The position numbers were made by a program, and so were the translations under genes. Source: Diplonema japonicum (lineage: Eukaryota; Protista; Euglenozoa: Diplonemea). From it: a stretch of DNA of 64,000 bases. Shown piece by piece: positions 3 to 40,488 of the stretch; positions within the stretch are counted from its first letter, which is position 1; each line of letters opens with the position of its first letter. The stretch spans positions 248,001-312,000 of the forward strand of contig OZ025742.1 of assembly GCA_964019335.1 (NCBI GenBank), given 5' to 3'. The notes beneath the pieces were generated by a model, which was given only the letters and a program-made list of their open reading frames with translations, searched no databases and was not told where the DNA came from.

Positions 3-2114
3 ATTGATGAAAATCTTTTATATGGGTGCAACAATCTAGAAACCATCAACTTGAATGCGATGACCAATCTTTCTTCCATTGGTGATGGCTTCTTGGAAGG
101 GTGCGTAAAACTAGAAACCATCGACTTGAATGCGATGACCAATCTTTCTTCTATTGGTCATTACTTCTTGTCTGAGTGCATAAAACTAGAAACCATCAAC
201 TTGAATGCGATGACCAATCTTTCTTCCATTGGTGATGGCTTCTTGGAAGGGTGCGTAAAACTAGAAACCATCGACTTGAATGCGATGACCAATCTTTCTT
301 CTATTGGTCATTACTTCTTGTCTGAGTGCATAAAACTAGAAACCATCAACTTGAATGCGATGACCAATCTTTCTTCCATTGGTAATCGCTTCTTGTTTAG
401 GTGCGTAAAACTAGAAACCATCGACTTGAATGCGATGACCAATCTTTCTTCTATTCGTAATTACTTCTTGTCTGAGTGCATAAAACTAGAAACCATCAAC
501 TTGAATGCGATGACCAATCTTTCCTCTATTGGTGATTACTTCTTGTCTGAGTGCGAAAAACTAGAAACCATCAACTTGAATGCGATGACCAATCTTTCTT
601 CTATTGGTGATCGCTTCTTGGAAGAGTGCGTAAAACTAGAAACCATCAACTTGAATGCGATGACCAATCTTTCTTCCATTGGTAATCGCTTCTTGTTTAG
701 GTGCGTAAAACTAGAAACCATCGACTTGAATGCGATGACCAATCTTTCTTCTATTCGTAATTACTTCTTGTCTGAGTGCATAAAACTAGAAACCATCAAC
801 TTGAATGCGATGACCAATCTTTCCTCTATTGGTGATTACTTCTTGTCTGAGTGCGAAAAACTAGAAACCATCAACTTGAATGCGATGACCAATCTTTCTT
901 CCATTGGTGATCACTTCTTGTTTAGGTGCGTAAAACTAGAAACCATCAACTTGAATGCGATGACCAATCTTTCTTCTATTGGTGATTGCTTCTTGTTTGG
1001 GTGCGTAAAACTAGAAACCATCAACTTGAATGCGATGACCAATCTTTCTTCTATTGGTAATTACTTCTTGTCTGGGTGCAAAAAACTAGAAACCATCAAC
1101 TTGAATGCGATGACCAATCTTTCTTCTATTGGTGATCGCTTCTTGTTTGGGTGCAAAAAACTAGAAACCATCGACTTGAATGCGATGACCAATCTTTCTT
1201 CTATTGGTGATTGCTTCTTGTTTGGGTGCGAAAAACTAGAAACCATCAACTTGAATGCGATGACCAATCTTTCTTCTATTGGTAATTACTTCTTGTCTGG
1301 GTGCAAAAAACTAGAAACCATCAACTTGAATGCGATGACCAATCTTTCTTCTACTGGTTATGGCTTCTTGTTTAGGTGCGTAAAACTAGAAACCATCGAC
1401 TTGAATGCGATGACCAATCTTTCTTCCATTGGTGATTGCTTCTTGTCTGGGTGCGTAAAACTAGAAACCATCAACTTGAATGCGATGACCAATCTTTCTT
1501 CCATTGGTGATTGCTTCTTGTCTGGGTGCGTAAAACTAGAAACCATCAACTTGAATGCGATGACCAATCTTTCTTCCATTGGTAATCGCTTCTTGTTTAG
1601 GTGCGTAAAACTAGAAACCATCAACTTGAATGCGATGACCAATCTTTCTTCCATTGGTGATCGCTTCTTGTTAGGGTGCGTAAAACTAGAAACCATCAAC
1701 TTGAATGCGATGACCAATCTTTCTTCTATTGGTGATTACTTCTTGGAGGGGTGCAAAAAACTAGAAACCATCGACTTGAATGCGATGACCAATCTTTCTT
1801 CCATTGGTAATCGCTTCTTGTTTAGGTGCGTAAAACTAGAAACCATCGACTTGAATGCGATGACCAATCTTTCTTCCATTGGTCATTGCTTCTTGTTAGG
1901 GTGCGAAAAACTAGAAACCATCAACTTGAATGCGATGACCAATCTTTCTTCCATTGGTGATCGCTTCTTGTTTGGGTGCGAAAAACTAGAAACCATCGAC
2001 TTGAATACGTTGACCAATCTTTCTTCCATTGGTGATGGCTTCTTGTCTGGGTGCGTAAAACTAGAATCTGTCGACTTGAATTTAAAAAGAAAAAAAAGAA
2101 AAGTCGGTGTTTAG
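3..2114 (+). CDS. Ubl-LRR array gene 1 (5' part outside window); 27 x 25-aa BspA/TpLRR-like modules
   Basis: Window opens in the cap LRR (IDENLLYGCNNLETINL) shared with the paralogs. 27 NAMTNLSSIGxxFLxxCxKLETI[D/N]L units follow, ending in the tail NLKRKKRKVGV. Confidence 0.9.
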   Translation: MDENLLYGCNNLETINLNAMTNLSSIGDGFLEGCVKLETIDLNAMTNLSSIGHYFLSECIKLETINLNAMTNLSSIGDGFLEGCVKLETIDLNAMTNLSSIGHYFLSECIKLETINLNAMTNLSSIGNRFLFRCVKLETIDLNAMTNLSSIRNYFLSECIKLETINLNAMTNLSSIGDYFLSECEKLETINLNAMTNLSSIGDRFLEECVKLETINLNAMTNLSSIGNRFLFRCVKLETIDLNAMTNLSSIRNYFLSECIKLETINLNAMTNLSSIGDYFLSECEKLETINLNAMTNLSSIGDHFLFRCVKLETINLNAMTNLSSIGDCFLFGCVKLETINLNAMTNLSSIGNYFLSGCKKLETINLNAMTNLSSIGDRFLFGCKKLETIDLNAMTNLSSIGDCFLFGCEKLETINLNAMTNLSSIGNYFLSGCKKLETINLNAMTNLSSTGYGFLFRCVKLETIDLNAMTNLSSIGDCFLSGCVKLETINLNAMTNLSSIGDCFLSGCVKLETINLNAMTNLSSIGNRFLFRCVKLETINLNAMTNLSSIGDRFLLGCVKLETINLNAMTNLSSIGDYFLEGCKKLETIDLNAMTNLSSIGNRFLFRCVKLETIDLNAMTNLSSIGHCFLLGCEKLETINLNAMTNLSSIGDRFLFGCEKLETIDLNTLTNLSSIGDGFLSGCVKLESVDLNLKRKKRKVGV

Positions 2115-2494
2115 AAGAAGAAGAAAAAAAGAGGGGAAAGAAAGAAGAAAAAAGAACACCCTGGCACTGAGAAACATCTTTGTGGAAAAACCAACGGAAA
2201 GCAATCCAATACCACGAAGACACCGGGGACCTGCTCCCCTCCGCAACAACTCCACAACAACCATCTAACCTGCTGAAGTAGCATGCCGATCAGAAGGCGG
2301 CTGAGGCACTTGTCATTTAATCAGAATCCCGAGATCCCATCCCTGATCCCCAAATAGAGAGTGTACCATCCTGTTTCTCGAGGAAACAGAGAACCTACCC
2401 CCTCCCCACCACAGCACCCGACCAATCAGATGCAGCAGTGTGAAAAAAAAAAAAAGCCCCCCTCTCCCCAAACAAAACAAACAAACAAACATTT

Positions 2495-2550
2495 CCCCAC
2501 CCCCGATAACGTATAATTAAGAAAAGTATGGGGGGGAAAGGATACTGAGG
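2495..2550 (+). repeat. ~55-95-bp dispersed motif CCACCCCCGATAACGTATAATTAAG...GGATACTGAGG, 10 copies in LRR 3' flanks
   Basis: Copies near 2495, 2665, 9062, 20151, 20321, 26363, 34965, 40868, 41038 and 41791; absent from the equivalent site at ~15220. Confidence 0.85.
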
Positions 2551-3442
2551 TGCGGCACCCTTAGTAGCCAAAAAAAAAAAGAAAGTGTAAAGTGTTAAAC
2601 AGCCAGCAAAGCTTGTGGAAAGAGAACACCAAGAAAAAAAAAGAGAGAGAAAAAAAGACCAGGACCACCCCCGATAACGTATAATTAAGAATAAAAATTG
2701 TGGGGGGGGAAGGATACTGAGGTCTGGCACCAGCGGATGAGGATGCGGGAAAGGGGGTTGCACTGCTTTCCCTGCCAAAGCTAGTCGAGGGTGCACACCT
2801 TGCGACATATGGGGCCCGACGGCACATGGTGACGACAGGAGACCACTTTTCTCCTCGAGCCAAACAGCCCCTTACCTTGCATGACTCCATGTAATGTTCC
2901 TCGCCCAGATGCCGTCCATCTCATCACGACAAACAGCCACCGCAGGCACCAGACAGCAACCGCAGTACGGTGACCGATTAGTGTGGATTTCTACTTGAAC
3001 AGTGAACACTCCCCTATGTGCACTGAAGCTTTATCGATTTTTTTAATTTTTTTTATTTGCTTCCAAGCTTTCTCTTGAAACTTTTGATTGTTACCTCAAG
3101 TTAGTTACCGTTCTTACTGAGCGCCGTTTGACTTTGTCACCTTGATGTTAAAAGATCGACCTTTTTTTTTCTTCTTCTTTTTTTATTTTTTATTTTCTTC
3201 TGATGACCGTGGTGGTCGAGCTTTCTTTACCTCTCCACTTTCGGGGCGAAGTTTAACAAGGGTGACCGCTGTGTCACATTCCGCATGGCACCACTAAAAT
3301 CGAGTCCCCCCTCCCCCTTCTTTTTTCCAGTGTGTCTTCTCTTTTTGTTGTTCTTCTTTCACAAGCATTATTATTGTGCGCCTGTGGTGTGGGTTTACCT
3401 TCAACACGAATACAGGGGGTGGGGGAAGAAGAAGAAAAAAAA

Positions 3443-4321
3443 ATGGCGCCGGTGGGAGCATCAACGCCAACACAGTGCAAGTACCTGCCGATTTGGCATC
3501 AGAGGATAATGGAAGAGTCGGAGCTAAGCCGGGAGAAGAAGAACAAAATGCTCATATTTTTCAAGGGGCTGTTGGTGGCTCTCCTGCGGTGCAAACCGCG
3601 CAACCCCATCAGCTTCTGTGAGAAGTACGTTGAAGAAAAAGTAGAAGGCGACGAACTAGAAACCAGCCTGTGCAGAAGCTGGAGGGGAGACTTCAACACC
3701 TACGACTTCACCAGAGACACCTCAGACGTGTTCCAAGTAAATAACCGAGATGTCTATGGGGAGTACGAGACTATTAGAAAAACCCTCGACTTCAACTACC
3801 ACGGTAACTACTCAAAAACCCGACAAGCAGTCCAAGACATAGCGGTCTCCGACGTTGTCCTGGGCGGTGAACTCAAATCCGAACCCTGGCTCGTCTACAC
3901 AGCAGGAGCAATGGGGGCTGGGAAGTCCCATGTTATCAGGTGGATGTCCGACCACGGGTATTTCCCACTACCGGACATCGTTCAAATAGACCCCGATCGG
4001 TTCAAAGAAATGCTCCCAGAATGGCAGGGCTACGTGGAGCATGACCCCATGCAAGCTGGGGGTAGAATGCGCAAGGAATCCGGGTATCTAGTTGAAATCG
4101 CACAGCACAAGGCAATGGACATGGGCAAGAACGTGTGGGTGGACGGGTCCCTGCCCAGAGCACTGGCTAGGGTTGAGCTGCACACCGCATGCATTAAGGA
4201 CACAACGTGGAACGCAAACGCGGCCGAGGTGCACCCTGTCACTGGTCTCCTTTACCTCTTTTATTGTTGCGTGGTTTATTTTGTCTTGAAACTACATTTC
4301 GCGTTAAAATTTTTGTTTTAA
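3443..4321 (+). pseudogene. Truncated copy of the zeta-toxin-like gene (breaks at VDGSL, 4153), reading into piggyBac-flank sequence
   Basis: Identical to 42227 onward up to 4153, then cccagagc... foreign sequence. Confidence 0.85.
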
Positions 4322-5702
4322 TTGAAACCGGCAGGGTTGGCTTAAAATGAAATCAGATGGTCAAAATAGCAGCGAAAACGTGAGTCTCCCCCGACTGGTC
4401 AGATAAAGAGGAAAAAGACGATGAGGCGGTCAAAGAGGGGCCGGAAACGATGCTTGGGTGGGAGAAATACTCCCAAAGGCCTGAAACATATCATTTCCGT
4501 GAAAAGGTGGGCTTAGGACACCTCTAGGTGAAGCGGCCAATGAGGAGGGTGTTTTTAATCTTTTTTTGTTACACACGCTCATAGTTTCTTCCACGAACGG
4601 TCGTTTCGGTTCAAAAAAACAGCGGAATCTGAATCTTTCCATCCCAGAGTACAAAATTTGGCTTGGGTTGGTCCTGTTAATGGGTTTACACCCGGCACCG
4701 AATATGAAAAGCTACTGGGCAACAGATTCTATTTTAGCCATCCCGGCTTTTGAGAAAATGAGCAAACCGATTCGTTGACATACAGCGCTACCTCACCTTT
4801 GACAACCTGGAAAACATCAGTAAGGCTTGAAACTGCGCCTCATGCACAGGTTTCTTGACATCATTGTCAACCGGTGTAGGACTGTGCGGACCCCTGGCAA
4901 GTGGTTGTCTGTTGACGACAGTGTTATCCCGACAACAATAAAAGTCATGGCACCACGAAAAAAAAACAACTCGGTGGGCATCAAGGTAATCGCTACATGC
5001 GACTCATAAAACGGTTACCTGGCGAATTTCAACATTTTCAGCAAGAAGTCCACAACACAGGACCTAGTCATGCATACTGTCGACTCCTATGGGTTTGCTG
5101 TCGACCCCTGACCGGCAAGACCAGCTCCAGGGGACTGGAGTTTGGCATATGAAAACCCGGAAGTAGTCGTTATTTATTGGGTTCTGGAAAGCTGTGTTGC
5201 CAACTCCTCCATAATCTGGAAGAAGAGCAGGGAATGTGGCAAAAATTATGGCTTCCCGAGCTTCAAAGAAGAACTTGTTGGCAAGCTTCTCACCCATGCC
5301 AGGTGCAAACGTGGTGCCCCTGTTGCAACCCCCCCTTATGCAAAACGTGTTTTTTACCCTTGCATGCTACCCCAGCTGGAAAAAAAACTCACAAGTTGCT
5401 TTTTTCATCCCACAGCCCCAAAAAGTCTCCAGACTGACCTCAATCCTAGAGTTCAGGGCACCAAATAGGGCTGAATGCTGCCTTTTTTAGCCCAGCCATA
5501 ACTCCACGGACCCCCCACGACAAGACCCCCCAAAATCGGACATAAAAAGTACACCCTCAACCCCCCTCTTACACACATAGTTAAGTGTTCTCATCTGAAT
5601 CTGGCACCTGGAATTGAAAATTTTAGTACCGTTTACCCTTTCCTTGCACCTTCCTATGGTTGCATGCTGCCCTTTTTTTTGAGTATTTAAAGCAACAACG
5701 AA
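4154..5702 (+). mobile_element. Degenerate piggyBac-family element fragment
   Basis: Frameshifted transposase motifs WLGLVLLMGL...SYWATD, PGKWLSVDDSVIP, GIKVIATCDS and IYWVLESCVANS; both ends truncated. Confidence 0.85.
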
Positions 5703-6110
5703 TGTGTCCTACCATCGCAGCACCCACCTTCTCACGGAGGTGATGCCGTTGATCGGCGATCTCATCTACGGCAACAACGGGCGGAGGTGGGCCGCCTGAG
5801 GCACAGGTTGTTCTTCTCACACCACCCGCGCGCCCACTCGTAGCCCAGGTCGTCGTCCGTGAGCTGCTGGCAGGAGATTGCAAGCCCTTGGGCGAGGCTT
5901 GAAACCCTGCGGTAGCTCAACGGGGCGCCGGCCTGTATCTGCTCCTTCACTGTTTCCCGCGGAGCAGCCTGTCTGTCTCACTTCTGAGGGTGGGCGGGCG
6001 ACCGGCCGTTCTTTTCGGTGCAGACTCTTCCTCCCACCCCCACCATGGGCTATCTCGCGGGATCGCTTGTGTAGCTTAGCTGCGACATCCTGTTTCGCCT
6101 GGTCAGCAAC
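5703..6110 (-). mobile_element. pogo/Tc5-like transposase fragment (CENP-B-type HTH); copies at 23603-24010 and 31832-32234
   Basis: QIQAGAPLSYRRVSSLAQ...GYEWARGWCEKNNLCLRRPT resembles the HTH_Tnp_Tc5 pattern. Confidence 0.6.
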
Positions 6111-6196
6111 CGGCAGCCTTCGAGACAAAGCACACAGGGAAAATACATTAGAAAAAAAGAAAAAGAAAGAAAAAAAAAAAACAATATTAAAAGAAC

Positions 6197-8686
6197 ATGA
6201 ATGGAAAGAGAGAGGGATCAGGTGAAGAGGTGAACGATATGACAGTGTTCGTGAAGACGGGAGGCGGGGTTCACGATGTGGAAGTGTCGGGGAAGGAGAC
6301 GGTGGGGATCCTGTACAAGAAGGCGGGGTGTGCTGCTGGTTTACTCGAAGGCAAGTTCGAACTGGTTTGGGAGGGAGAGGTCCTGGACAAGAACGGGGGT
6401 GAAGATATCCAGGAACTCGGGCTCGTGGAGGGCAGCGTGGTCCATGTGGAGGCGAAGATGAGAACCGTTCAGTTGGAGGAGCTTGAGAGCTCAGAAGTGG
6501 TTTCAGAGCTTGAGGAGCTTGTGACAGCTGACCCTGAGCTGGTTCTGGTGGTGGAGGTGGGGAACTCGCCAGCTGTCGAAGTCTTGTCCATGAAGACGAC
6601 GGTCCTTCCTTCCGGACTTCGGTTCCTCGTTGTCACCGACTCCACAGGCTGTGTTACAAGGATAGGCTCTTGGTTTCTTGAAGAGTGCGACCACCTGACG
6701 TCTGTTGATCTCATCCTCCCCAATGTTTCCACCATTGATGAAAATCTTTTATATGGGTGCAACAATCTAGAAACCATCAACTTGAATGCGATGACCAATC
6801 TTTCTTCCATTGGTGATGGCTTCTTGGAAGGGTGCGTAAAACTAGAAACCATCGACTTGAATGCGATGACCAATCTTTCTTCTATTGGTGATTACTTCTT
6901 GTCTGAGTGCATAAAACTAGAAACCATCAACTTGAATGCGATGACCAATCTTTCTTCTATTGGTCATTACTTCTTGTCTGGGTGCGAAAAACTAGAAACC
7001 ATCGACTTGAATGCGATGACCAATCTTTCTTCCATTGGTAATCGCTTCTTGTTTGGGTGCGAAAAACTAGAAACCATCGACTTGAATGCGATGACCAATC
7101 TTTCTTCCATTGGTAATCGCTTCTTGTTTGGGTGCGAAAAACTAGAAACCATCGACTTGAATGCGATGACCAATCTTTCTTCCATTGGTGATCGCTTCTT
7201 GTTTAGGTGCGTAAAACTAGAAACCATCAACTTGAATGCGATGACCAATCTTTCTTCTATTGGTCATTACTTCTTGTCTGGGTGCGAAAAACTAGAAACC
7301 ATCGACTTGAATGCGATGACCAATCTTTCTTCCATTGGTAATCGCTTCTTGTCTGGGTGCGTAAAACTAGAAACCATCGACTTGAATGCGATGACCAATC
7401 TTTCTTCCATTGGTAATCGCTTCTTGTTTAGGTGCGTAAAACTAGAAACCATCAACTTGAATGCGATGACCAATCTTTCTTCTATTGGTCATTACTTCTT
7501 GTCTGGGTGCGAAAAACTAGAAACCATCGACTTGAATGCGATGACCAATCTTTCTTCCATTGGTGATCGCTTCTTGTTTAGGTGCGTAAAACTAGAAACC
7601 ATCAACTTGAATGCGATGACCAATCTTTCTTCTATTGGTGATGACTTCTTGTTTGGGTGCGTAAAACTAGAAACCATCGACTTGAATGCGATGACCAATC
7701 TTTCTTCTATTGGTCATTACTTCTTGTCTGGGTGCGAAAAACTAGAAACCATCGACTTGAATGCGATGACCAATCTTTCTTCTATTGGTGATGGCTTCTT
7801 GGAAGGGTGCGTAAAACTAGAAACCATCAACTTGAATGCGATGACCAATCTTTCTTCCATTGGTAATCGCTTCTTGTTAGGGTGCGAAAAACTAGAAACC
7901 ATCAACTTGAATGCGATGACCAATCTTTCTTCCATTGGTCATTGCTTCTTGTTTGGGTGCGTAAAACTAGAAACCATCGACTTGAATGCGATGACCAATC
8001 TTTCTTCTATTGGTCATTACTTCTTGTCTGGGTGCGAAAAACTAGAAACCATCGACTTGAATGCGATGACCAATCTTTCTTCTATTGGTGATGGCTTCTT
8101 GGAAGGGTGCGTAAAACTAGAAACCATCGACTTGAATGCGATGACCAATCTTTCTTCCATTGGTTATCGCTTCTTGTTTAGGTGCGTAAAACTAGAAACC
8201 ATCAACTTGAATGCGATGACCAATCTTTCTTACATTGGTGATCGCTTCTTGTTTAGGTGCGTAAAACTAGAAACCATCAACTTGAATGCGATGACCAATC
8301 TTTCTTCCATTGGTGATTGCTTCTTGTCTGAGTGCGTAAAACTAGAAACCATCAACTTGAATGCGATGACCAATCTTTCTTCTATTGGTGATTACTTCTT
8401 GGAGGGGTGCGTAAAACTAGAAACCATCGACTTGAATGCGATGACCAATCTTTCTTCCATTGGTGATCGCTTCTTGGAAGGGTGCGTAAAACTAGAAACC
8501 ATCAACTTGAATGCGATGACCAATCTTTCTTCCATTGGTGATCGCTTCTTGTTTGGGTGCGAAAAACTAGAAACCATCGACTTGAATACGTTGACCAATC
8601 TTTCTTCCATTGGTGATGGCTTCTTGTCTGGGTGCGTAAAACTAGAATCTGTCGACTTGAATTTAAAAAGAAAAGTCGGTGTTTAG
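6197..8686 (+). CDS. Ubl-LRR array gene 2, 829 aa, 25 modules
   Basis: N-terminal MTVFVKTGGGVHDVEV...ELVWEGEVLD...IQELGLVEGSVVHV aligns by eye with ubiquitin (MQIFVKT...LIFAGKQLED...LSDYNIQKESTLHL). Length = 196-aa N-region + 25x25 aa + 8-aa tail. No signal peptide or TM helix. Confidence 0.92.
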   Translation: MNGKREGSGEEVNDMTVFVKTGGGVHDVEVSGKETVGILYKKAGCAAGLLEGKFELVWEGEVLDKNGGEDIQELGLVEGSVVHVEAKMRTVQLEELESSEVVSELEELVTADPELVLVVEVGNSPAVEVLSMKTTVLPSGLRFLVVTDSTGCVTRIGSWFLEECDHLTSVDLILPNVSTIDENLLYGCNNLETINLNAMTNLSSIGDGFLEGCVKLETIDLNAMTNLSSIGDYFLSECIKLETINLNAMTNLSSIGHYFLSGCEKLETIDLNAMTNLSSIGNRFLFGCEKLETIDLNAMTNLSSIGNRFLFGCEKLETIDLNAMTNLSSIGDRFLFRCVKLETINLNAMTNLSSIGHYFLSGCEKLETIDLNAMTNLSSIGNRFLSGCVKLETIDLNAMTNLSSIGNRFLFRCVKLETINLNAMTNLSSIGHYFLSGCEKLETIDLNAMTNLSSIGDRFLFRCVKLETINLNAMTNLSSIGDDFLFGCVKLETIDLNAMTNLSSIGHYFLSGCEKLETIDLNAMTNLSSIGDGFLEGCVKLETINLNAMTNLSSIGNRFLLGCEKLETINLNAMTNLSSIGHCFLFGCVKLETIDLNAMTNLSSIGHYFLSGCEKLETIDLNAMTNLSSIGDGFLEGCVKLETIDLNAMTNLSSIGYRFLFRCVKLETINLNAMTNLSYIGDRFLFRCVKLETINLNAMTNLSSIGDCFLSECVKLETINLNAMTNLSSIGDYFLEGCVKLETIDLNAMTNLSSIGDRFLEGCVKLETINLNAMTNLSSIGDRFLFGCEKLETIDLNTLTNLSSIGDGFLSGCVKLESVDLNLKRKVGV

Positions 8687-9555
8687 AAGAAGAAGAAAAA
8701 AAGAGGGGAAAGAAAGAAGAAAAAAGAGCACCCTGGCACTGAGAAACATCTTTGTGGAAAAACCAACGGAAAGCAATCCAATACCACGAAGACACCGGGG
8801 ACCTGCTCCCCTCCGCAACAACTCCACAACAACCATCTAACCTGCTGAAGTAGCATGCCGATCAGAAGGCGGCTGAGGCACTTGTCATTTAATCAGAATC
8901 CCGAGATCCCATCCCTGATCCCCAAATAGAGAGTGTACCATCCTGTTTCTCGAGGAAACAGAGAACCTACCCCCTCCCCACCACAGCACCCGACCAATCA
9001 GATGCAGCAGTGTGAAAAAAAAAAAAGCCCCCCTCTCCCCAAACAAAACAAACAAACATTTCCCCACCCCCGATAACGTATAATTAAGAAAAAATATGGG
9101 GGGGAAAGGATACTGAGGTGCGGCACCCTTAGTAGCCAAAAAAAAAAAAGTGTAAAGTGTTAAACAGCCAGCAAAGCTTGTGGAAAGAGAACACCAAGAA
9201 AAAAAAAGAGAGAAAAAAAGACCAGGACACCCCCTCCCCGGTCGTGAGAGGCCTATGGGTGTGGCACACCATGTCTGAAACGTTTAGCTCCCTTGAAGCT
9301 CACACCAGTGTGCGAGTTTGGCCCATTTTATTTTGGCACGTTGGCGATGGCTGTGGTGGTCGTCGCAAGAGCGCCTGCAGGAAGTATTGGACGATAACAG
9401 TTAATGGGTTTCGTTTTTCTTCTTTTTTTCTTCTTTTTCTTCTTAGTTTATCACCGTTCTTACTGAGCGCCATTTGACTTGTCACCTTGATGTTAAAAGA
9501 TCGACCCTTTTTTTTTTTTTTTTTTTATTGCAGGCCGTTGCTAACCACTTCGTTC

Positions 9556-9769
9556 TGTTATTTTCATTATTCTTTCCGGCGATAGACTGATACGGGCCAT
9601 GGAAGCAACCTCTGCTTAATTCCTGGTACGTGGGAGGCTCCTCTTGAGGATGTCAGTCACCTTTTCCCCTTTTTTATTCGACTCTCTGTTTTCGTATGCA
9701 GTATTTATTCTTTTCCACCCCTTTTTATCTATTTTTTCGCTTCTCTATTCTAACTTAAAATCATTTCAG
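9556..9769 (+). mobile_element. 214-bp 5'-truncated copy of the same element with a 14-bp TSD (duplicate at 35460-35673; partial at 15739-15828)
   Basis: Direct repeat TAACCACTTCGTTC at 9542-9555 and 9770-9783; the body matches 31619-31831. Confidence 0.8.
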
Positions 9770-10260
9770 TAACCACTTCGTTCCGAATTTTTTTTCTTTC
9801 AAAAATGAAAAAATAAAGTGCTTTATTTTCCCTTGGGAAATATGGAAAACTTTATTACCCCACTCTCGTCACCAGGTGGTGGGGATAACATGGAAAGATA
9901 AAGAAGTACATCAGATGTGTTGTTCGCTGTTGACCTCCATGTTGGTCATCACCGGTAGCGCCCAAGTGGAAGAAGCGGGTTTGCAGCAAACTACACGGGC
10001 TCAGAATCTTGGTTACCCGGGGCGCCCCGGCTGGGGTTGAGCTGCACACCGCACGCATTAAGGACACGACGCAGAACGCAGAAGAAGCTACAGCTAGGCT
10101 GAGGTGCGCCCCCTGTAATCAAGTGCTTGTGCAGGGTGCCCCCACCGGCTTCCTTTAAATCATCGAGTTTATTTTTCCCGGCTCTAGCCAAAATTCCTTT
10201 AGAGGGAATCCAGAAAATAAATAAAAAAAAAAAGAAGAAAAAAAAAAAAAAAAAAAAAAA

Positions 10261-11092: not shown

Positions 11093-11108
11093 CTTAAAAT
11101 CATTTCAG
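11059..11108 (+). mobile_element. 50-bp 3'-terminal copy of the same element inside the kinase, TSD CCACC (duplicate at 36960-37009)
   Basis: The uninterrupted target sequence is preserved in a local duplicate at 11178-11250. Confidence 0.7.
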
Positions 11109-11250
11109 CCACCTGATGTATTTTACGACGAACCACAATATGAAATGGGCGACGAAAACAAGATGCTTGACACCCTCAACTCACGGGGTCAGACACCCCA
11201 CCCCCACCTGATGTATTTTACGACGAACCACAATATGAAATGGGCGACGA

Positions 11251-11292
<42 letters not shown>

Positions 11293-11423
11293 TAACTCCA
11301 TTCCCCCCCGCGCCTTTAGATTTTGCATTTTTTTTTCTTTGTGGTGTTTTTTATTTTTTTTTATTTTTTTTTATTTATTTTTTTTTTATATTATTATTAC
11401 CGGATTCGTATTTATATTGTTAT

Positions 11424-15242: not shown

Positions 15243-15278
<36 letters not shown>

Positions 15279-16426: not shown

Positions 16427-16460
<34 letters not shown>

Positions 16461-16485
16461 CCCTTACAACAAATTGACAATGGGG

Positions 16486-27200: not shown

Positions 27201-27335
27201 CAGTAGGTTTTTTTATTTTCTAGAGGTTCTTCTTCTTCATTTGACTCCTGCAGCCTTCGAGACAAAGCACACAGGGAAAATACATTAGAAAAAAAGAAAA
27301 AAAAAAAAAAAAAAAAAAAACAATATTAAAAGAAC

Positions 27336-31831: not shown

Positions 31832-32320
31832 CTACCATCGCAGCACCCACCTTCTCACGGAGGTGATGCCGTTGATCGGCGATCTCATCTACGGCAACAA
31901 CGGGCGGAGGTGGGCCGCCTGAGGCACAGGTTGTTCTTCTCACACCACCCGCGCGCCCACTCGTAGCCCAGGTCGTCGTCCGTGAGCTGCTGGCAGGAGA
32001 TTGCAAGCCCTTGGGCGAGGCTTGAAACCCTGCGGTAGCTCAACGGGGCGCCGGCCTGTATCTGCTCCTTCACTGTTTCCCGCGGAGCAGCCTGTCTGTC
32101 TCACTTCTGAGGGTGGGCGGGCGACCGGCCGTTCTTTTCGGTGCAGACTCTTCCTCCCACCCCCACCATGGGCTATCTCGCGGGATCGCTTGTGTAGCTT
32201 AGCTGCGACGTCCTGTTTCGCCTGGTCAGCAACCGGCAGCCTTCGAGACAAAGCACACAGGGAAAATACGTTAGAAAAAAAGAAAAAGAAAGAAAAAAAA
32301 AAAAACAATATTAAAAGAAC

Positions 32321-34585
32321 ATGAATGGAAAGAGAGAGGGATCAGGTGAAGAGGTGAACGATATGACAGTGTTCGTGAAGACGGGAGGCGGGGTTCACGA
32401 TGTGGAAGTGTCGGGGAAGGAGACGGTGGGGATCCTGTACAAGAAGGCGGGGTGTGCTGCTGGTTTACTCGAAGGCAAGTTCGAACTGGTTTGGGAGGGA
32501 GAGGTCCTGGACAGGAACGGGGGTGAAGATATCCAGGAACTCGGGCTCGTGGAGGGCAGCGTGGTCCATGTGGAGGCGAAGATGAGAACCGTTCAGTTGG
32601 AGGAGCTTGAGAGCTCAGAAGTGGTTTCAGAGCTTGAGGAGCTTGTGACAGCTGACCCTGAGCTGGTTCTGGTGGTGGAGGTGGGGAACTCGCCAGCTGT
32701 CGAAGTCTTGTCCATGAAGACGACGGTCCTTCCTTCCGGACTTCGGTTCCTCGTTGTCACCGACTCCACAGGCTGTGTTACAAGGATAGGCTCTTGGTTT
32801 CTTGAAGAGTGCGACCACCTGACGTCTGTTGATCTCATCCTCCCCAATGTTTCCACCATTGATGATAATCTTTTATATGGGTGCAAAAATCTAGAAACCA
32901 TCAACTTGAATGCGATGACCAATCTTTCTTCCATTGGTAATCGCTTCTTGTTTGGGTGCGAAAAACTAGAAACCATCGACTTGAATGCGATGACCAATCT
33001 TTCTTCTATTGGTGATTACTTCTTGTCTGAGTGCATAAAACTAGAAACCATCAACTTGAATGCGATGACCAATCTTTCTTCCATTGGTGATCGCTTCTTG
33101 TTTGGGTGCGAAAAACTAGAAACCATCAACTTGAATGCGATGACCAATCTTTCTTCTACTGGTGATGGCTTCTTGTCTGGGTGCGTAAAACTAGAAACCA
33201 TCGACTTGAATGCGATGACCAATCTTTCTTCCATTGGTGATGGCTTCTTGTCTGAGTGCATAAAACTAGAAACAATCAACTTGAATGCGATGACCAATCT
33301 TTCTTCTACTGGTGATGGCTTCTTGTTTGGGTGCGAAAAACTAGAAACCATCGACTTGAATGCGATGACCAATCTTTCTTCCATTGGTGATTGCTTCTTG
33401 TTTGGGTGCGAAAAACTAGAAACCATCGACTTGAATGCGATGACCAATCTTTCTTCCATTGGTAATCGCTTCTTGTCTGGGTGCGTAAAACTAGAAACCA
33501 TCGACTTGAATGCGATGACCAATCTTTCTTCTATTGGTGATTACTTCTTGTCTGAGTGCATAAAACTAGAAACCATCAACTTGAATGCGATGACCAATCT
33601 TTCTTCTACTGGTGATGGCTTCTTGTCTGGGTGCGTAAAACTAGAAACCATCGACTTGAATGCGATGACCAATCTTTCTTCCATTGGTAATCGCTTCTTG
33701 TTTAGGTGCGTAAAACTAGAAACCATCAACTTGAATGCGATGACCAATCTTTCTTCCATTGGTGATCGCTTCTTGTTAGGGTGCGTAAAACTAGAAACCA
33801 TCAACTTGAATGCGATGACCAATCTTTCTTCTATTGGTGATGACTTCTTGGAGGGGTGCAAAAAACTAGAAACCATCGACTTGAATGCGATGACCAATCT
33901 TTCTTCTACTGGTGATAGCTTCTTGTCTGGGTGCGTAAAACTAGAAACCATCGACTTGAATGCGATGACCAATCTTTCTTCCATTGGTAATCGCTTCTTG
34001 TTTGGGTGCGTAAAACTAGAAACCATCGACTTGAATGCGATGACCAATCTTTCTTCCATTGGTGATCGCTTCTTGTTTAGGTGCGTAAAACTAGAAACCA
34101 TCAACTTGAATGCGATGACCAATCTTTCTTCTATTGGTGATTACTTCTTGTCTGGGTGCGTAAAACTAGAAACCATCAACTTGAATGCGATGACCAATCT
34201 TTCTTCCATTGGTGATCGCTTCTTGTTTGGGTGCGTAAAACTAGAAACCATCAACTTGAATGCGATGACCAATCTTTCTTCTATTGGTGATGGCTTCTTG
34301 GAAGGGTGCGTAAAACTAGAAACCATCAACTTGAATGCGATGACCAATCTTTCTTCCATTGGTAATCGCTTCTTGTTTAGGTGCGTAAAACTAGAAACCA
34401 TCAACTTGAATGCGATGACCAATCTTTCTTACATTGGTGATCGCTTCTTAGAAGGGTGCGAAAAACTAGAAACCATCGACTTGAATGCGATGACCAATCT
34501 TTCTTCCATTGGTGATCGCTTCTTGGAAGGGTGCGTAAAACTAGAATCTGTCGACTTGAATTTAAAAAGAAAAGTCGGTGTTTAG
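32321..34585 (+). CDS. Ubl-LRR array gene 7, 754 aa, 22 modules
   Basis: Same architecture; length = 504 + 10x25 aa; enriched in STG variants. Confidence 0.92.
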   Translation: MNGKREGSGEEVNDMTVFVKTGGGVHDVEVSGKETVGILYKKAGCAAGLLEGKFELVWEGEVLDRNGGEDIQELGLVEGSVVHVEAKMRTVQLEELESSEVVSELEELVTADPELVLVVEVGNSPAVEVLSMKTTVLPSGLRFLVVTDSTGCVTRIGSWFLEECDHLTSVDLILPNVSTIDDNLLYGCKNLETINLNAMTNLSSIGNRFLFGCEKLETIDLNAMTNLSSIGDYFLSECIKLETINLNAMTNLSSIGDRFLFGCEKLETINLNAMTNLSSTGDGFLSGCVKLETIDLNAMTNLSSIGDGFLSECIKLETINLNAMTNLSSTGDGFLFGCEKLETIDLNAMTNLSSIGDCFLFGCEKLETIDLNAMTNLSSIGNRFLSGCVKLETIDLNAMTNLSSIGDYFLSECIKLETINLNAMTNLSSTGDGFLSGCVKLETIDLNAMTNLSSIGNRFLFRCVKLETINLNAMTNLSSIGDRFLLGCVKLETINLNAMTNLSSIGDDFLEGCKKLETIDLNAMTNLSSTGDSFLSGCVKLETIDLNAMTNLSSIGNRFLFGCVKLETIDLNAMTNLSSIGDRFLFRCVKLETINLNAMTNLSSIGDYFLSGCVKLETINLNAMTNLSSIGDRFLFGCVKLETINLNAMTNLSSIGDGFLEGCVKLETINLNAMTNLSSIGNRFLFRCVKLETINLNAMTNLSYIGDRFLEGCEKLETIDLNAMTNLSSIGDRFLEGCVKLESVDLNLKRKVGV

Positions 34586-36161
34586 AAGAAGAAGAAAAAA
34601 AGAGGGGAAAGAAAGAAGAAAAAAGAGCACCCTGGCACTGAGAAACATCTTTGTGGAAAAACCAACGGAAAGCAATCCAATACCTCGAAGACACCGGGGA
34701 CCTGCTCCCCTCCGCAACAACTCCACAACAACCATCTAACCTGCTGAAGTAGCATGCCGATCGGAAGGCGGCTGAGGCACTTGTCATTTAATCAGAATCC
34801 CGAGATCCCATCCCTGATCCCCAAATAGAGAGTGTACCATCCTGTTTCTCGAGGAAACAGAGAACCTACCCCCTCCCCACCACAGCACCCGACCAATCAG
34901 ATGCAGCAGTGTGAAAAAAAAAAAAGCCCCCCTCTCCCCAAACAAAACAAACAAACAAACATTTCCCCACCCCCGATAACGTATAATTAAGAAAAAATAT
35001 GGGGGGGAAAGGATACTGAGGTGCGGCACCCTTAGTAGCCAAAAAGAAAAAAGTGTAAAGTGTTAAACAGCCAGCAAAGCTTGTGGAAAGAGAACACCAA
35101 GAAAAAAAAAGAGAGAAAAAAAGACCAGGACACCCCCTCCCCGGTCGTGAGAGGCCTATGGGTGTGGCACACCATGTCTGAAACGTTTAGCTCCCTTGAA
35201 GCTCACACCAGTGTGCGAGTTTGGCCCATTTTATTTTGGCACGTTGGCGATGGCTGTGGTGGTCGTCGCAAGAGCGCCTGCAGGAAGTATTGGACGATAA
35301 CAGTTAATGGGTTTCGTTTTTCTTCTTTTTTTCTTCTTTTTCTTCTTAGTTTATCACCGTTCTTACTGAGCGCCATTTGACTTGTCACCTTGATGTTAAA
35401 AGATCGACCCTTTTTTTTTTTTTTTTTTTTATTGCAGGCCGTTGCTAACCACTTCGTTCTGTTATTTTCATTATTCTTTCCGGCGATAGACTGATACGGG
35501 CCATGGAAGCAACCTCTGCTTAATTCCTGGTACGTGGGAGGCTCCTCTTGAGGATGTCAGTCACCTTTTCCCCTTTTTTATTCGACTCTCTGTTTTCGTA
35601 TGCAGTATTTATTCTTTTCCACCCCTTTTTATCTATTTTTTCGCTTCTCTATTCTAACTTAAAATCATTTCAGTAACCACTTCGTTCCGAATTTTTTTTC
35701 TTTCAAAAATGAAAAAATAAAGTGCTTTATTTTCCCTTGGGAAATATGGAAAACTTTATTACCCCACTTTCGTCACCAGGTGGTGGGGATAACATGGAAA
35801 GATAAAGAAGTACATCAGATGTGTTGTTCGCTGTTGACCTCCATGTTGGTCATCACCGGTAGCGCCCAAGTGGAAGAAGCGGGTTTGCAGCAAACTACAC
35901 GGGCTCAGAATCTTGGTTACCCGGGGCGCCCCGGCTGGGGTTGAGCTGCACACCGCACGCATTAAGGACACGACGCAGAACGCAGAAGAAGCTACAGCTA
36001 GGCTGAGGTGCGCCCCCTGTAATCAAGTGCTTGTGCAGGGTGCCCCCACCGGCTTCCTTTAAATCATCGAGTTTATTTTTCCCGGCTCTAGCCAAAATTC
36101 CTTTAGAGGGAATCCAGAAAATAAATAAAAAAAAAAAGAAGAAAAAAAAAAAAAAAAAAAA

Positions 36162-36993
36162 CAATTGTTTGACAAACGACAACAAGCGCATCGTGGTAAA
36201 GATGATAGAATGCGACACAGAAATTCAAATAGAGAGTGCGATTAGAGAGCTGCACAATCTGTGCTTCTTCACCTTCGAGGCCCCCCACAACCACATCATT
36301 CCCTTTGTGGACACATGGTTTGCAAACAATTCACTTTTCGTCTCGCTTCCTCGGTTCGAATTCCCGCTGGACGTCGTTTTAGAAAAAAAAATTGAAAAAC
36401 CACTGGCGTGTATTCCAGGGAAAATAAGAGAAGATCTCACAGTACAACTCCTGGCGGCGGTTATCCACCTCCATCAGCTGGGAATTGTACACCGTGACTT
36501 AAAACCGAGCAACGTTGTTGTGAACAAGGATTTATCAGAATTGTGCGTAATCGACTTGGGGAGCTTGAGAAAACCTAGCGTTGCAGGTGAACAAGGTCCG
36601 CCGTTAACTCCCGCGAAAAATTGCATGACAGAGGGGTACTTCCCTCCTGAAACACTTGTTGGCGTTGAAAAATCTTATGGCAGGGAAGCTGACAACTTTG
36701 CTGTCGGGCTGACTCTTGCATCAATGATAACTGGGGGTGAAATATTTGAAGACAACGAGAAGGTTGAGGACAAGCTTGACTCGCTGAAGCTGGAAAAGAA
36801 ACGGAGAGCTTTTGTTCAATCCCTGTTCCGCGGCATCAGAGGTATTCCCAACAGGGAGATTGACTGCATAACTAGTCTCCTTGCAGCTCACCCGGCGGCT
36901 CGAGCTACATCTGTTCAAGTTTTTAGAAAACTCACGGGGTCAGACACCCCACCCCCACCCTTTTTTACCCATTTTTTCGCTTCTCTATTCTGA
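36162..36993 (+). pseudogene. Duplicate truncated Ser/Thr kinase
   Basis: Near-identical to 10261-11092. Confidence 0.8.
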
Positions 36994-37151
36994 CTTAAAA
37001 TCATTTCAGCCACCTGATGTATTTTACGACGAACCACAATATGAAATGGGCGACGAAAACAAGATGCTTGACACCCTCAACTCACGGGGTCAGACACCCC
37101 ACCCCCACCTGATGTATTTTACGACGAACCACAATATGAAATGGGCGACGA

Positions 37152-37186
<35 letters not shown>

Positions 37187-37317
37187 TAACTCCATTCCCC
37201 CCCGCGCCTTTAGATTTTGCATTTTTTTTTCTTTGTGGTGTTTTTTATTTTTTTTTATTTTTTTTTATTTATTTTTTTTTTATATTATTATTACCGGATT
37301 CGTATTTATATTGTTAT

Positions 37318-38070
37318 CCCCTAAACGCCCAGAGCCTATCTATGGTACCCCCCCCCCCCATTTTCGTTGTTGCTTTAAATACTCAAAAAAAGGGCAGCAT
37401 GCAACCATAGGAAGGTGCAAGGAAAGGGTAAACGGTACTAAAGTTTTCAATTCCAGGTGCCAGATTCAGATGAGAACACTTAACTATGTGTGTAAGAGGG
37501 GGGTTGAGGGTGTACTTTTTATGTCCGATTTTGGGGGGGTCTTGTCGTGGGGGGTCCGTGGAGTTATGGCTGGGCTAAAAAGGGCAGCATTCAGCCCTAT
37601 TTGGTGCCCTGAACTCTAGGATTGAGGTCAGTCTGGAGACTTTTTGGGGCTGCGAGATGAAAAAAGCAACTTGTGAGTTTTTTTTCCAGCTGGGGTAGCA
37701 TGCCATCATCCTCCCTGGCGTGTTCCTTTTCAGGCTGTGGAAGGAAGCCGGAATGCTCCAGCAGTTCCTCCTGCAGGTCAAGCAGGAGTGCATCTTGTTT
37801 TCGTATAGCTTCTGATGGAGCCCCAGGGAACAGAAGAAGTTGTTGAAGGCGATACTACGGTGGGTTCCCAGCCAGGGGTCGACAGCACACATGACTAGGT
37901 CCTGTGTTGTGGACTTCTTGCTGCAAATGTTGAAATTCGCCAGGTAACCGTTTGATGAGTCGCATGTAGCGATTACCTTGATGCCCACCGAGTTGTTTTT
38001 TCGTGGTGCCATGACTTTCGTGGTGCCATGACTTTCATTGTTGTCCACCCATCAAAGGGGATAACACTGT
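37318..38070 (-). mobile_element. piggyBac fragment (duplicate of 11424-12156)
   Basis: Same sequence within block B copy 2. Confidence 0.85.
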
Positions 38071-38523
38071 GTAACAATGTGTACCGATCACGGGCAGTCA
38101 AGAAGCCATGGAGCGACATGTTTATTCGGAGTATAGGGGAGAGAAGCCAAAAATAATAAAAATAATCTTTTGTATTGTTCTGTAAAAAGTCCCAAGTTGG
38201 GTTCAAAATCCGAAAAAAAGTACATAATTTATACAGTACACTAAATCCCCAGACCATTATTAAAGCTGAACAATATAAATACAAATCCGGTATCTTTATT
38301 ATTATTATTATTATTAAATTCACCCCTTGAAAAGCATTGAAATAATGCATTTTCATTTAATAAATAGTTATTCGTCACCTTTTTCTTGAAGATGTTCGTT
38401 TCACAGTAGGTTTTTTTATTTTCTAGAGGTTCTTCTTCTTCATTTGACTCCTGCAGCCTTCGAGACAAAGCACACAGGGAAAATACATTAGAAAAAAAGA
38501 ATAAAAAACGAACCCAAAAGAAC

Positions 38524-40488
38524 ATGAATGGAAAGAGAGAGGGATCAGGTGAAGAGGTGAACGATATGACAGTGTTCGTGAAGACGGGAGGCGGGGTTCA
38601 CGATGTGGAAGTGTCGGGGAAGGAGACGGTGGGGATCCTGTACAAGAAGGCGGGGTGTGCTGCTGGTTTACTCGAAGGCAAGTTCGAACTGGTTTGGGAG
38701 GGAGAGGTCCTGGACAGGAACGGGGGTGAAGATATCCAGGAACTCGGGCTCGTGGAGGGCAGCGTGGTCCATGTGGAGGCGAAGATGAGAACCGTTCAGT
38801 TGGAGGAGCTTGAGAGCTCAGAAGTGGTTTCAGAGCTTGAGGAGCTTGTGACAGCTGACCCTGAGCTGGTTCTGGTGGTGGAGGTGGGGAACTCGCCAGC
38901 TGTCGAAGTCTTGTCCATGAAGACGACGGTCCTTCCTTCCGGACTTCGGTTCCTCGTTGTCACCGACTCCACAGGCTGTGTTACAAGGATAGGCTCTTGG
39001 TTTCTTGAAGAGTGCGACCACCTGACGTCTGTTGATCTCATCCTCCCCAATGTTTCCACCATTGATGAAAATCTTTTATATGGGTGCAAAAATCTAGAAA
39101 CCATCAACTTGAATGCGATGACCAATCTTTCTTCCATTGGTGATGGCTTCTTGGAAGGGTGCGTAAAACTAGAAACCATCGACTTGAATGCGATGACCAA
39201 TCTTTCTTCTATTGGTGATTACTTCTTGTCTGAGTGCATAAAACTAGAAACCATCAACTTGAATGCGATGACCAATCTTTCTTCTATTGGTGATCGCTTC
39301 TTGGAAGAGTGCGAAAAACTAGAAACCATCAACTTGAATGCGATGACCAATCTTTCTTCCATTGGTAATCGCTTCTTGTTTAGGTGCGTAAAACTAGAAA
39401 CCATCAACTTGAATGCGATGACCAATCTTTCTTCTATTGGTCATTACTTCTTGTCTGAGTGCATAAAACTAGAAACCATCAACTTGAATGCGATGACCAA
39501 TCTTTCTTCCATTGGTGATCGCTTCTTGTTTGGGTGCGAAAAACTAGAAACCATCAACTTGAATGCGATGACCAATCTTTCTTCTATTGGTCATTACTTC
39601 TTGGAGGGGTGCAAAAAACTAGAAACCATCGACTTGAATGCGATGACCAATCTTTCTTCCATTGGTGATAGCTTCTTGTTTGGGTGCAAAAAACTAGAAA
39701 CCATCAACTTGAATGCGATGACCAATCTTTCTTCTATTGGTTATTACTTCTTGTCTGGGTGCGAAAAACTAGAAACCATCGACTTGAATGCGATGACCAA
39801 TCTTTCTTCTATTGGTGATTACTTCTTGGAGGGGTGCAAAAAACTAGAAACCATCAACTTGAATGCGATGACCAATCTTTCTTCCATTGGTGATTACTTC
39901 TTGGAGGGGTGCAAAAAACTAGAAACCATCGACTTGAATGCGATGACCAATCTTTCTTCCATTGGTGATCGCTTCTTGTTAGGGTGCGTAAAACTAGAAA
40001 CCATCGACTTGAATGCGATGACCAATCTTTCTTCCATTGGTCATTGCTTCTTGTTAGGGTGCGAAAAACTAGAAACCATCGACTTGAATGCGATGACCAA
40101 TCTTTCTTCCATTGGTCATTACTTCTTGGAGGGGTGCGAAAAACTAGAAACCATCGACTTGAATGCGATGACCAATCTTTCTTCCATTGGTCATTACTTC
40201 TTGGAGGGGTGCGAAAAACTAGAAACCATCGACTTGAATGCGATGACCAATCTTTCTTCCATTGGTGATGGCTTCTTGGAAGGGTGCGTAAAACTAGAAA
40301 CCATCAACTTGAATGCGATGACCAATCTTTCTTCCATTGGTGATCGCTTCTTGTTTGGGTGCGAAAAACTAGAAACCATCGACTTGAATACGTTGACCAA
40401 TCTTTCTTCCATTGGTGATGGCTTCTTGTCTGGGTGCGTAAAACTAGAATCTGTCGACTTGAATTTAAAAAGAAAAGTCGGTGTTTAG
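38524..40488 (+). CDS. Ubl-LRR array gene 8, 654 aa, 18 modules
   Basis: Same architecture; length = 504 + 6x25 aa. Confidence 0.92.
   Translation: MNGKREGSGEEVNDMTVFVKTGGGVHDVEVSGKETVGILYKKAGCAAGLLEGKFELVWEGEVLDRNGGEDIQELGLVEGSVVHVEAKMRTVQLEELESSEVVSELEELVTADPELVLVVEVGNSPAVEVLSMKTTVLPSGLRFLVVTDSTGCVTRIGSWFLEECDHLTSVDLILPNVSTIDENLLYGCKNLETINLNAMTNLSSIGDGFLEGCVKLETIDLNAMTNLSSIGDYFLSECIKLETINLNAMTNLSSIGDRFLEECEKLETINLNAMTNLSSIGNRFLFRCVKLETINLNAMTNLSSIGHYFLSECIKLETINLNAMTNLSSIGDRFLFGCEKLETINLNAMTNLSSIGHYFLEGCKKLETIDLNAMTNLSSIGDSFLFGCKKLETINLNAMTNLSSIGYYFLSGCEKLETIDLNAMTNLSSIGDYFLEGCKKLETINLNAMTNLSSIGDYFLEGCKKLETIDLNAMTNLSSIGDRFLLGCVKLETIDLNAMTNLSSIGHCFLLGCEKLETIDLNAMTNLSSIGHYFLEGCEKLETIDLNAMTNLSSIGHYFLEGCEKLETIDLNAMTNLSSIGDGFLEGCVKLETINLNAMTNLSSIGDRFLFGCEKLETIDLNTLTNLSSIGDGFLSGCVKLESVDLNLKRKVGV

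Follow-up and report, generated by a model that had tools for sequence, protein, structure and literature searches.

Ubiquitin-like LRR genes with module-shuffling arrays in the diplonemid Diplonema japonicum: a diversifying family of candidate intracellular binders

Leucine-rich repeats (LRRs) of the BspA-like class are known from large expansions in protists. In fungi, the WD, ANK and TPR repeats of NOD-like receptors (NLRs) follow a regime that joins concerted evolution to diversifying selection; high internal repeat conservation with few positively selected surface positions is enriched in fungal non-self receptors, and highly conserved repeats are otherwise rare, at 0.4-1.2% of repeats in a survey that holds no LRR example (PMC1805685, PMC4986451). 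Here we describe a family that follows the same regime with LRRs. The window, by which we mean the whole stretch of 64,000 nucleotides analysed (Diplonema japonicum contig OZ025742.1; G000:C95:248001-312000), carries eight same-strand paralogues that join a ubiquitin-like (Ubl) head to an array of near-identical 25-residue LRR modules. These Ubl-LRR genes occupy bases 1-40488, all on the + strand, as delimited by a listing of open reading frames (ORFs) and by Tandem Repeats Finder.

Tandem Repeats Finder reports one array of period 75 bp in each of genes 1-8, with 27.3, 25.3, 22.5, 12.5, 17.5, 14.0, 22.5 and 18.5 copies, 89-92% matches and 0% indels. When the arrays are cut in register they yield 27, 25, 22, 12, 17, 13, 22 and 18 full modules (156 altogether), and a partial terminal module closes every array. 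None of the 156 contains a stop or a frameshift, and the string of modules is unique in each of the eight genes. The module counts given in a first-pass annotation of this DNA were thus exact, as were its statements that length changes come in multiples of 75 bp and that no two genes share a module order. It had also described a nearly identical N-region of 196 aa; the near-identity is real (98-100%, with a nonsynonymous difference per site, pN, of 0.007 and a synonymous one, pS, of 0.004), and the stretch ahead of the first regular module measures 190 aa. Its open-ended count of "13+" modules for gene 6 becomes 13 full modules, in an array terminated by a 2.9-kb mobile element at 28933-31836. 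The genes and their parts are as follows.

1-2114, + strand: gene 1, 3' part, frame from base 3; 27 full modules, terminal partial module, tail LKRKKRKVGV
G000:C95:247466, 535 bp upstream of the window: head (Ubl) of gene 1, cut off by the window edge
6197-8686, + strand: gene 2, 829 aa; Ubl, linker/cap, 25 modules, KRKVGV tail
12607-14886, + strand: gene 3, 759 aa; 22 modules, tail LKRKKKRKVGV
18107-18175, + strand: polypyrimidine tract followed by AG, ~85 nt upstream of the gene 4 ATG; candidate spliced-leader acceptor
18258-19772, + strand: gene 4, 504 aa; the copy used for modelling
~18300-18527: gene 4, Ubl
18528-18827: gene 4, linker helix and LRR cap
18828-19727: gene 4, 12 modules
19728-19772: gene 4, terminal partial module, KRKVGV tail, stop
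24097-25986, + strand: gene 5, 629 aa; 17 modules
27336-28997, + strand: gene 6; 13 full modules, array broken by mobile-element insertion
32321-34585, + strand: gene 7, 754 aa; 22 modules
38524-40488, + strand: gene 8, 654 aa; 18 modules

At its entire length gene 1 would encode ~882 aa, a figure derived from an 884-aa open frame, and further family copies lie upstream of the window on the same contig (C95:240042 and 241805). The array of gene 3 includes a super-repeat of 225 bp (three modules) in 4-5 copies. Because the mobile element cuts the array of gene 6, the frame of that gene enters element sequence and the normal C-terminus is lost. Outside the arrays, the C-terminal tails vary by 9-12 bp through KRK insertions. 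The true start of gene 4 is probably Met15 (18300), since divergent paralogues and one transcript-derived relative begin with M(S)ITVFVKT.

The modules are alike almost everywhere and strongly different at a few positions. Their consensus is LETI[ND]LN[AT][ML]TNLSSIG[DNHY][RYGC..]FL[FSELY][GERW]C[VEKI]K, and the variable codons are 5, 8, 9, 17, 18, 21, 22 and 24. Across all 156 modules these eight codons show a pN of 0.265 against a pS of 0.035, so that pN is ~7 times pS, whereas the remaining 17 show a pN of 0.004 and a pS of 0.051 (pN/pS ~0.08). Polymorphism is found at 18 of the 75 nucleotide sites (14 nonsynonymous, three purely synonymous, one mixed). Mean pairwise identity is 91.9% at the nucleotide and 83.1% at the amino acid level; fungal NLR-type repeats are ~85% or more identical. 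By counts of pN and pS, rather than by a site-model test, positive selection is confined to few positions per repeat. Mutagenesis of the kind driven by diversity-generating retroelements was considered and rejected, as the variation is not limited to adenines (codon 17 is NAT and codon 18 mostly NRC). In a structure model of gene 4, positions 3-5 form a first strand and 14-15 a second, short one; the main hypervariable positions (17, 18, 21, 22 and 24) fall in the non-beta segment past the IG motif, and the exposed residues of the concave face, E2, T3 and N7, are invariant. This pattern suggests one constant face and one variable flank, with the variation lying off the canonical concave sheet.

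Modules are no more alike within a gene than between genes (nucleotide identity 0.921 and 0.918). The flanks of the arrays are >99.5% identical, yet the arrays diverge from the first module onward: genes 2 and 5 differ at two sites over the 600 nt that precede the array and then by 8, 9, 4 and 10 mismatches per 75-nt module, and genes 2 and 7 show the same contrast on the 3' side. Sharing of modules among some genes is limited to the last two to four, and internal duplications of three and four modules are visible. On other contigs, 19 loci with 222 modules have the same scaffold and the same hypervariable positions; these 222 comprise 135 distinct modules, of which 23 types are shared with copies fetched from the window region. 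The comparisons show arrays that gain, lose and swap 75-bp modules in frame, both inside a gene and from one gene to another, a scaffold that concerted evolution freezes, synonymous sites included, and five to eight positions per module (17, 18, 21, 22 and 24, plus 5, 8 and 9) that selection keeps diverse. Genome-wide, the germline repertoire amounts to several hundred module variants. At the level of sequence, we consider concerted evolution across loci with diversifying selection at defined sites to be a solid description of the regime. The earlier proposal of reshuffled, diversifying arrays is borne out by the unique module strings, the pN/pS contrast and the equality of identity within and between genes.

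The architecture is equally clear. The gene product matches the BspA-type family LRR_5 of Pfam with 239.6 bits (cut-off 27.7; E 7.9e-72), and PF00240, the ubiquitin family, with 25.4 bits, exactly at the cut-off. An AlphaFold2 (AF2) model of gene 4, built from an alignment of 20 family members, reaches a predicted local distance difference test (pLDDT) score of 91.5 and a predicted template modelling (pTM) score of 0.82. Its LRR part finds its best solved-structure matches by Foldseek in 4fs7 (E 7.8e-12), 4gt6, 4h09, 4cp6 (PcpA) and 6mlx (TpLRR), so that the predicted solenoid is of the BspA/TpLRR type. The head modelled alone (pLDDT 89.9) superposes on ubiquitin and NEDD8 chains with template modelling scores of 0.83-0.87 and a root-mean-square deviation of 1.4-1.9 A over 71-76 residues; on this model it is a true ubiquitin fold. 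Among Ubl domains the family profile matches Dsk2 best (E 2.7e-4), followed by ubiquitin, Rad23, midnolin and parkin. The head runs on into ...VEAKMRTVQLEEL and has no C-terminal Gly-Gly, which identifies the predicted Ubl as integral and non-cleavable. The positions of the canonical L8/I44/H68/V70 patch read G, V, H and E, with L8 changed to G, I44 to V and V70 to E, and H68 kept. The Ubl is followed by a helix, then by a conserved cap (ADPELVLxVxVG ... LPSGLRxLVVTDS) and finally by the regular modules, each of which includes an N-x-S/T motif.

Proteins of the window subfamily end in a basic tail motif, LNLKRK(KRK)VGV, whose KRK(K)RKV stretch resembles a monopartite nuclear localisation signal (NLS), as judged from the motif alone. 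Neither a signal peptide nor a transmembrane (TM) helix was found in the gene product (maximum 19-residue Kyte-Doolittle value 1.19, hydrophilic N-terminus). Pfam detected no UBA, UIM, NTPase or death-type effector domain, and the AF2 model likewise contains no NTPase. Pfam, AF2, Foldseek, the superposition on ubiquitin and the hydropathy values thus agree with the first reading of the locus, which had paired a Ubl with LRR_5 repeats, expected a beta-grasp fold for the N-domain and noted the lack of export signals.

The family extends far beyond the window. Matches to the head region number at least 151 in the genome, with identities of 34-100%; most are in open frames, and they lie in arrays on several contigs. 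Sister subfamilies have another C-terminal cap (SLPEEHAL) or CaaX-like ends; in divergent subfamilies (L035:1867-3411 and ORFs in L044 and L045) the tails are CaaX-like or have a double cysteine (...CCIA, ...CVVC, ...CVLC), which suggests lipid anchoring on the cytosolic side of a membrane. A word-based search of 5.8 billion proteins returned three transcriptome ORFs only, and a profile hidden Markov model (HMM) search of 1.84 billion representatives returned ~27 clusters with the complete architecture. All 15 of the full-architecture clusters whose taxa were looked up are transcripts of D. japonicum or D. ambulator. Three divergent paralogues, which are not the genes of the window, are transcribed, because D. 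japonicum Trinity ORFs (P0005, P0006 and P0011) match them at full length with 100% identity. On these exact matches the genome is that of D. japonicum or of a strain essentially identical to it. From these sequences, the family is a large, diplonemid-specific multigene family of predicted intracellular proteins. A literature search for a Ubl-LRR or BspA family in kinetoplastids or diplonemids found no description.

Some HMM matches share the linker, the cap and the LRR and are without the Ubl; they include proteins of one more diplonemid, Flectonema, and of Holosporales metagenome-assembled genomes (MAGs). The named bacterial matches that share the cap are from Holosporales MAGs in all four cases. 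A subfamily-B protein of this genome (L038) is 48% identical to the Holosporales protein P0034 over 356 aa, in phase, and the alignment of a window protein with P0034 extends through the linker helix and the cap. The repeat consensuses of the diplonemid and Holosporales pair read LQTVDLTAFTNVTSIGxxFLxxCSG and LTSVDLSxFKNVTQIGxxFLxGCSS. F-box-like heads are present on P0034 and P0070 relatives, and an LRR-less paralogue is named "F-box protein" by NCBI. Named matches from Bacteroidales and Verrucomicrobiota are 32-37% identical, and the top LRR matches are unnamed metagenome proteins. A pattern-based search of genome contigs gave relatives of 26-35% identity only, the patterns being too query-specific, and the Holosporales-type protein appeared in three of 301 genomes from the order of one such match, which at ~1 Mb are probably Rickettsiales and are uninformative on Holosporales. 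D. japonicum hosts two Holosporaceae endosymbionts that lie free in the cytoplasm, and their genomes carry LRR genes beside effectors of a type VI secretion system (bioRxiv 10.1101/719211).

With moderate confidence, we favour the view that this is a diplonemid Ubl-LRR family with module-shuffling arrays whose products are intracellular, variable-specificity binders that share a constant Ubl handle. In this model, the Ubl head sits on the conserved helical linker and LRR cap, followed by a solenoid of 12-27 near-identical 25-residue modules. The hypervariable residues would line up on the non-concave flank of the solenoid as a variable stripe for binding, opposite a constant concave face with E2, T3 and N7. 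The proteins would act inside the cell, and the Ubl may provide a constant handle for docking or output, contacting the proteasome or some other partner that binds ubiquitin, with proteasomal delivery being one possible output of several. Likely ligands would be fast-evolving intracellular molecules, for which proteins of the cytoplasmic Holosporales endosymbionts are the best candidates. The observation and the evolutionary mechanism, as read from the sequence, are solid; the function is our interpretation.

Several points weigh against this view. The pS values are based on few synonymous sites, chiefly codon 14, and the three-dimensional placement of the hypervariable residues comes from the register of DSSP assignments, not from coordinates. 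The hypervariable positions are the generic "x" positions of TpLRR repeats, and since the same positions vary in bacteria too, part of the pattern mirrors the sites at which LRRs of this kind accept change in general. The Ubl appears to be without most of the canonical Ile44 patch (L8 to G, V70 to E), and a UBA, UIM, NTPase or death-type effector domain is absent as well, which leaves the output step to guesswork. As for the ligands, the Holosporales MAGs may come from hosts other than diplonemids, and members of the family also occur in species of Diplonema that are not known to have symbionts.

The locus itself is a mosaic of young segmental duplications, in which two units and one mobile element can be delimited.

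2093-6753, + strand: unit A, which includes the head of the following Ubl-LRR gene; second copy at 19751-24653, 99.7-99.96% identical and set apart by a 243-bp indel
3332-4321 (20941-22221 in the second copy): cargo of unit A, a truncated Zeta_toxin-like kinase fragment
8663-13164, + strand: unit B; second copy at 34562-39078, 98.7% identical
10127-11092 (36031-36993 in the second copy): cargo of unit B, a 5'-truncated protein-kinase fragment
28933-31836, + strand: mobile element, 2.9 kb, with a 795-aa ORF and a GC content of ~58%

The 243-bp joint that separates the copies of unit A is present in three independent public runs. At 42068-43600 a Zeta_toxin-like P-loop kinase is fused with a glutaredoxin domain; its upstream copies are truncated, one of them with a 243-bp deletion. 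The protein-kinase ORFs at 10127-11092 and 36031-36993 are without a glycine-rich loop, have a long A-run ahead of them and are probably 5'-truncated duplicates. We rejected the Zeta_toxin-like and protein-kinase ORFs as functional partners of the Ubl-LRR genes, the copies within the array being truncated by-products of segmental duplication. The mobile element has at least 60 genome copies at 99-100% identity, many of them in LRR-rich contigs, and because of this number and identity it is read as recently active. Its 795-aa ORF has no relative in Pfam or the ESM Atlas, and remnants of the element lie at 9548-9784 and 35452-35688.

The spliced-leader (SL) sequence was sought in the window as a sign of retroposed copies, and none was found there. 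Elsewhere in the genome, the 3' half of the SL, which identifies the organism as a euglenozoan, occurs in 251 dispersed copies, frequently close to the end of a contig and to Ubl-LRR genes outside this contig. At L051:1470-1520 the SL sequence is preceded by a poly(A) run, which suggests retroposed SL-bearing RNAs or an SL-associated element. Downstream of the Ubl-LRR array, an ORF of 202 aa at 50823-51431 contains an F-box-like domain (E 1.2e-7). A 2093-aa ORF at 53825-60106 combines an N-terminal signal-like segment, a HEIGHNLGRNH zinc-metallopeptidase motif (with weak Reprolysin-type matches), long Thr/Val-rich repeats and a C-terminal TM helix, and is a candidate surface metalloprotease or adhesin. 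At 61303-62235, an Arg/Asp-rich N-terminal half with RD repeats is followed by a C-terminal FHA domain (E 7.8e-17). A bacterial 16S search of the assembly returned the nuclear ribosomal DNA array alone, a tandem array of 6825-bp period at G000:C119:207-29439, and no endosymbiont contig was detected.

Such a setting invites the view that the Ubl-LRR genes are simply a fast-turnover family of a repeat-rich compartment, shaped by relaxed constraint and unequal crossing-over and with no specific role in recognition. Duplicated segments, truncated gene fragments and a young mobile element surround the genes, one copy (gene 6) is already disrupted, and the hypervariable sites are generic "x" positions. 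However, neither the sevenfold excess of pN at the hypervariable codons nor the low pN/pS of the scaffold fits relaxed constraint, open frames are kept in all 156 modules and in most of the 150-plus genomic copies, three paralogues are transcribed, and the family is conserved across diplonemid genera; we consider this view quite improbable. That the arrays or their module order were mis-assembled or collapsed seems barely credible to us. Short-read contigs of four runs (fragments of 100-700 bp) do break at the repeats and none spans an array, but the arrays are at most 2 kb long, each with a unique flank context and all in frame, 27 further loci on other contigs share the design, and the unit A indel recurs in independent runs. 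The LRR_5 type, typical of surface proteins, and the N-x-S/T motif of every module would suit adhesins that resemble bacterial BspA or Trichomonas TvBspA and leave the cell by non-classical export. These proteins have no signal peptide, TM helix or glycosylphosphatidylinositol (GPI)-type tail, and their integral N-terminal Ubl, their basic NLS-like tail and the CaaX-like tails of the sister subfamilies point to the cytosol or nucleus, which makes a place at the surface very improbable.

Two further readings keep the proteins inside the cell and are more specific than the one that we favour. In the first, a defence system, the LRR would recognise viral, transposon or endosymbiont molecules and the Ubl would hand them over to the proteasome in the manner of a Rad23/Dsk2- or midnolin-like shuttle. 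The head does have a Ubl fold, the best non-LRR matches of the family profile are the Ubls of Dsk2, Rad23, midnolin and parkin, a diversifying regime of this kind characterises non-self receptors, and the host has cytoplasmic bacteria. Against this stand the lack of a UBA or UIM domain, an Ile44 patch that is only half conserved and the many non-proteasomal roles of integral Ubls, and we regard proteasomal delivery as a possible but unlikely function. The second reading places the family at the interface of host and symbiont: an LRR cassette would have been swapped horizontally between Holosporales and diplonemids, and the Ubl-LRRs would decoy, sense or compete with the F-box-LRR effectors by which the symbiont takes over host ubiquitination, or else the symbiont proteins would mimic the host family. 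The in-register alignment with shared linker and cap, the near-identical repeat consensuses, the Holosporales origin of all four named bacterial cap-sharing matches, their F-box-like heads, the two Holosporaceae of D. japonicum and the lower identity of the Bacteroidales and Verrucomicrobiota matches all favour it. On the other side, transfer may have run either way, the MAGs may belong to other hosts, the top LRR matches are unnamed, the family also occurs in D. ambulator and Flectonema, and LRR consensus sequences can converge. We think this reading rather doubtful as it stands, and yet a role at the host-endosymbiont interface is to our mind the most attractive of the specific hypotheses, because it is in Holosporales, among bacteria, that the cap and LRR have their nearest relatives, proteins with F-box-like heads, and the host carries Holosporaceae in its cytoplasm. 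In its fullest form, the Ubl-LRRs would give D. japonicum a germline repertoire for recognising non-self inside the cell, made from an LRR cassette that the host has in common with its Holosporales endosymbionts, host Ubl-LRR and symbiont F-box-LRR being engaged in an arms race over the ubiquitin-proteasome system, which we deem similarly doubtful. If the non-self repertoire exists, it would be the first immune-receptor-like diversifying LRR family in Euglenozoa, and one without an NTPase switch.

Under the reading that we favour, intracellular binders with a constant Ubl handle, the family would bear on more than diplonemids. Near-identical repeats with few diversifying surface residues are rare, and where studied, in fungal NLRs, they mark non-self recognition genes. 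Here the regime is seen in an LRR joined to a Ubl, in more than 150 copies, in a diplonemid with cytoplasmic bacteria. If our interpretation is true, the principle would reach another type of repeat, another output domain and another supergroup of eukaryotes, all of them new to it, and conflict between host and endosymbiont could be approached through concrete molecules in a protist group that is among the most abundant in the ocean. The family would also provide a natural consensus-repeat scaffold with defined variable positions, useful for the engineering of binders.

By its defining features the family is not of the VLR, NLR, UBL-UBA or F-box type, though it resembles each in part. As in the variable lymphocyte receptors (VLRs) of agnathans, LRR modules in many orders build a repertoire, and the first-pass annotation had drawn this analogy, which does not hold further. 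In VLRs, an incomplete germline gene is filled in from cassette banks by somatic assembly, the product is secreted or held by a GPI anchor, and its variation lies on the concave beta-sheet, whereas the Ubl-LRR genes are complete in the germline, their products are predicted to be intracellular and the hypervariable residues lie outside the concave strand. No headless LRR cassette arrays, and thus no cassette banks, occur in the window, where every array lies within a head-to-tail ORF. The transcription activator-like (TAL) effectors offer an analogy of architecture only, with near-identical repeats (synonymous sites included), a repeat-variable residue pair, variable repeat number and a C-terminal NLS-like signal; their repeats are helical and 34 residues long, and in the Ubl-LRRs there is no evidence of nucleic-acid binding or of a code of one repeat per unit.

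Systems that touch ubiquitin are alike in other respects. The UBL-UBA shuttles (Rad23, Dsk2) and midnolin also have an integral N-terminal Ubl followed by a substrate-binding region, and Dsk2 gives the best Ubl profile match, but the Ubl-LRRs are without a UBA or Catch domain and conserve the Ile44 patch in part. F-box-LRR proteins (FBXL; the GALA effectors of Ralstonia, PMC2244805; and the Holosporales proteins) likewise combine an LRR recognition domain with a module of the ubiquitin system, and the Holosporales F-box-like LRR proteins have the cap and the 25-residue repeat in common with the diplonemid family. The F-box-like head, however, is found solely in these Holosporales relatives; the window proteins cannot be subunits of Skp1-Cullin-F-box (SCF) ligases by way of an F-box, since they have a Ubl instead. 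The BspA-like/TpLRR proteins (bacterial surface proteins, Trichomonas TvBspA and BspA-like proteins of Entamoeba) share the LRR class, by HMM and by fold, and differ in that the Ubl-LRRs have a Ubl head, no export signals and extreme homogenisation of the repeats with defined hypervariable positions. These last traits recur in the fungal NLRs (nwd, het-d and het-e; PMC1805685, PMC4986451), where tandem repeats are near-identical and variable in number, are exchanged within and between paralogues and are under positive selection at a handful of surface positions per repeat, in intracellular proteins that have no signal peptide. Concerted evolution within and between loci is common to both, as the values of 0.921 and 0.918 and the scaffold of the 19 other loci attest. 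The fungal repeats are WD40, ANK or TPR and those described here are LRRs; in place of a NACHT/NB-ARC NTPase and a HET/TIR-type death domain, the diplonemid genes bear a Ubl as their constant head.

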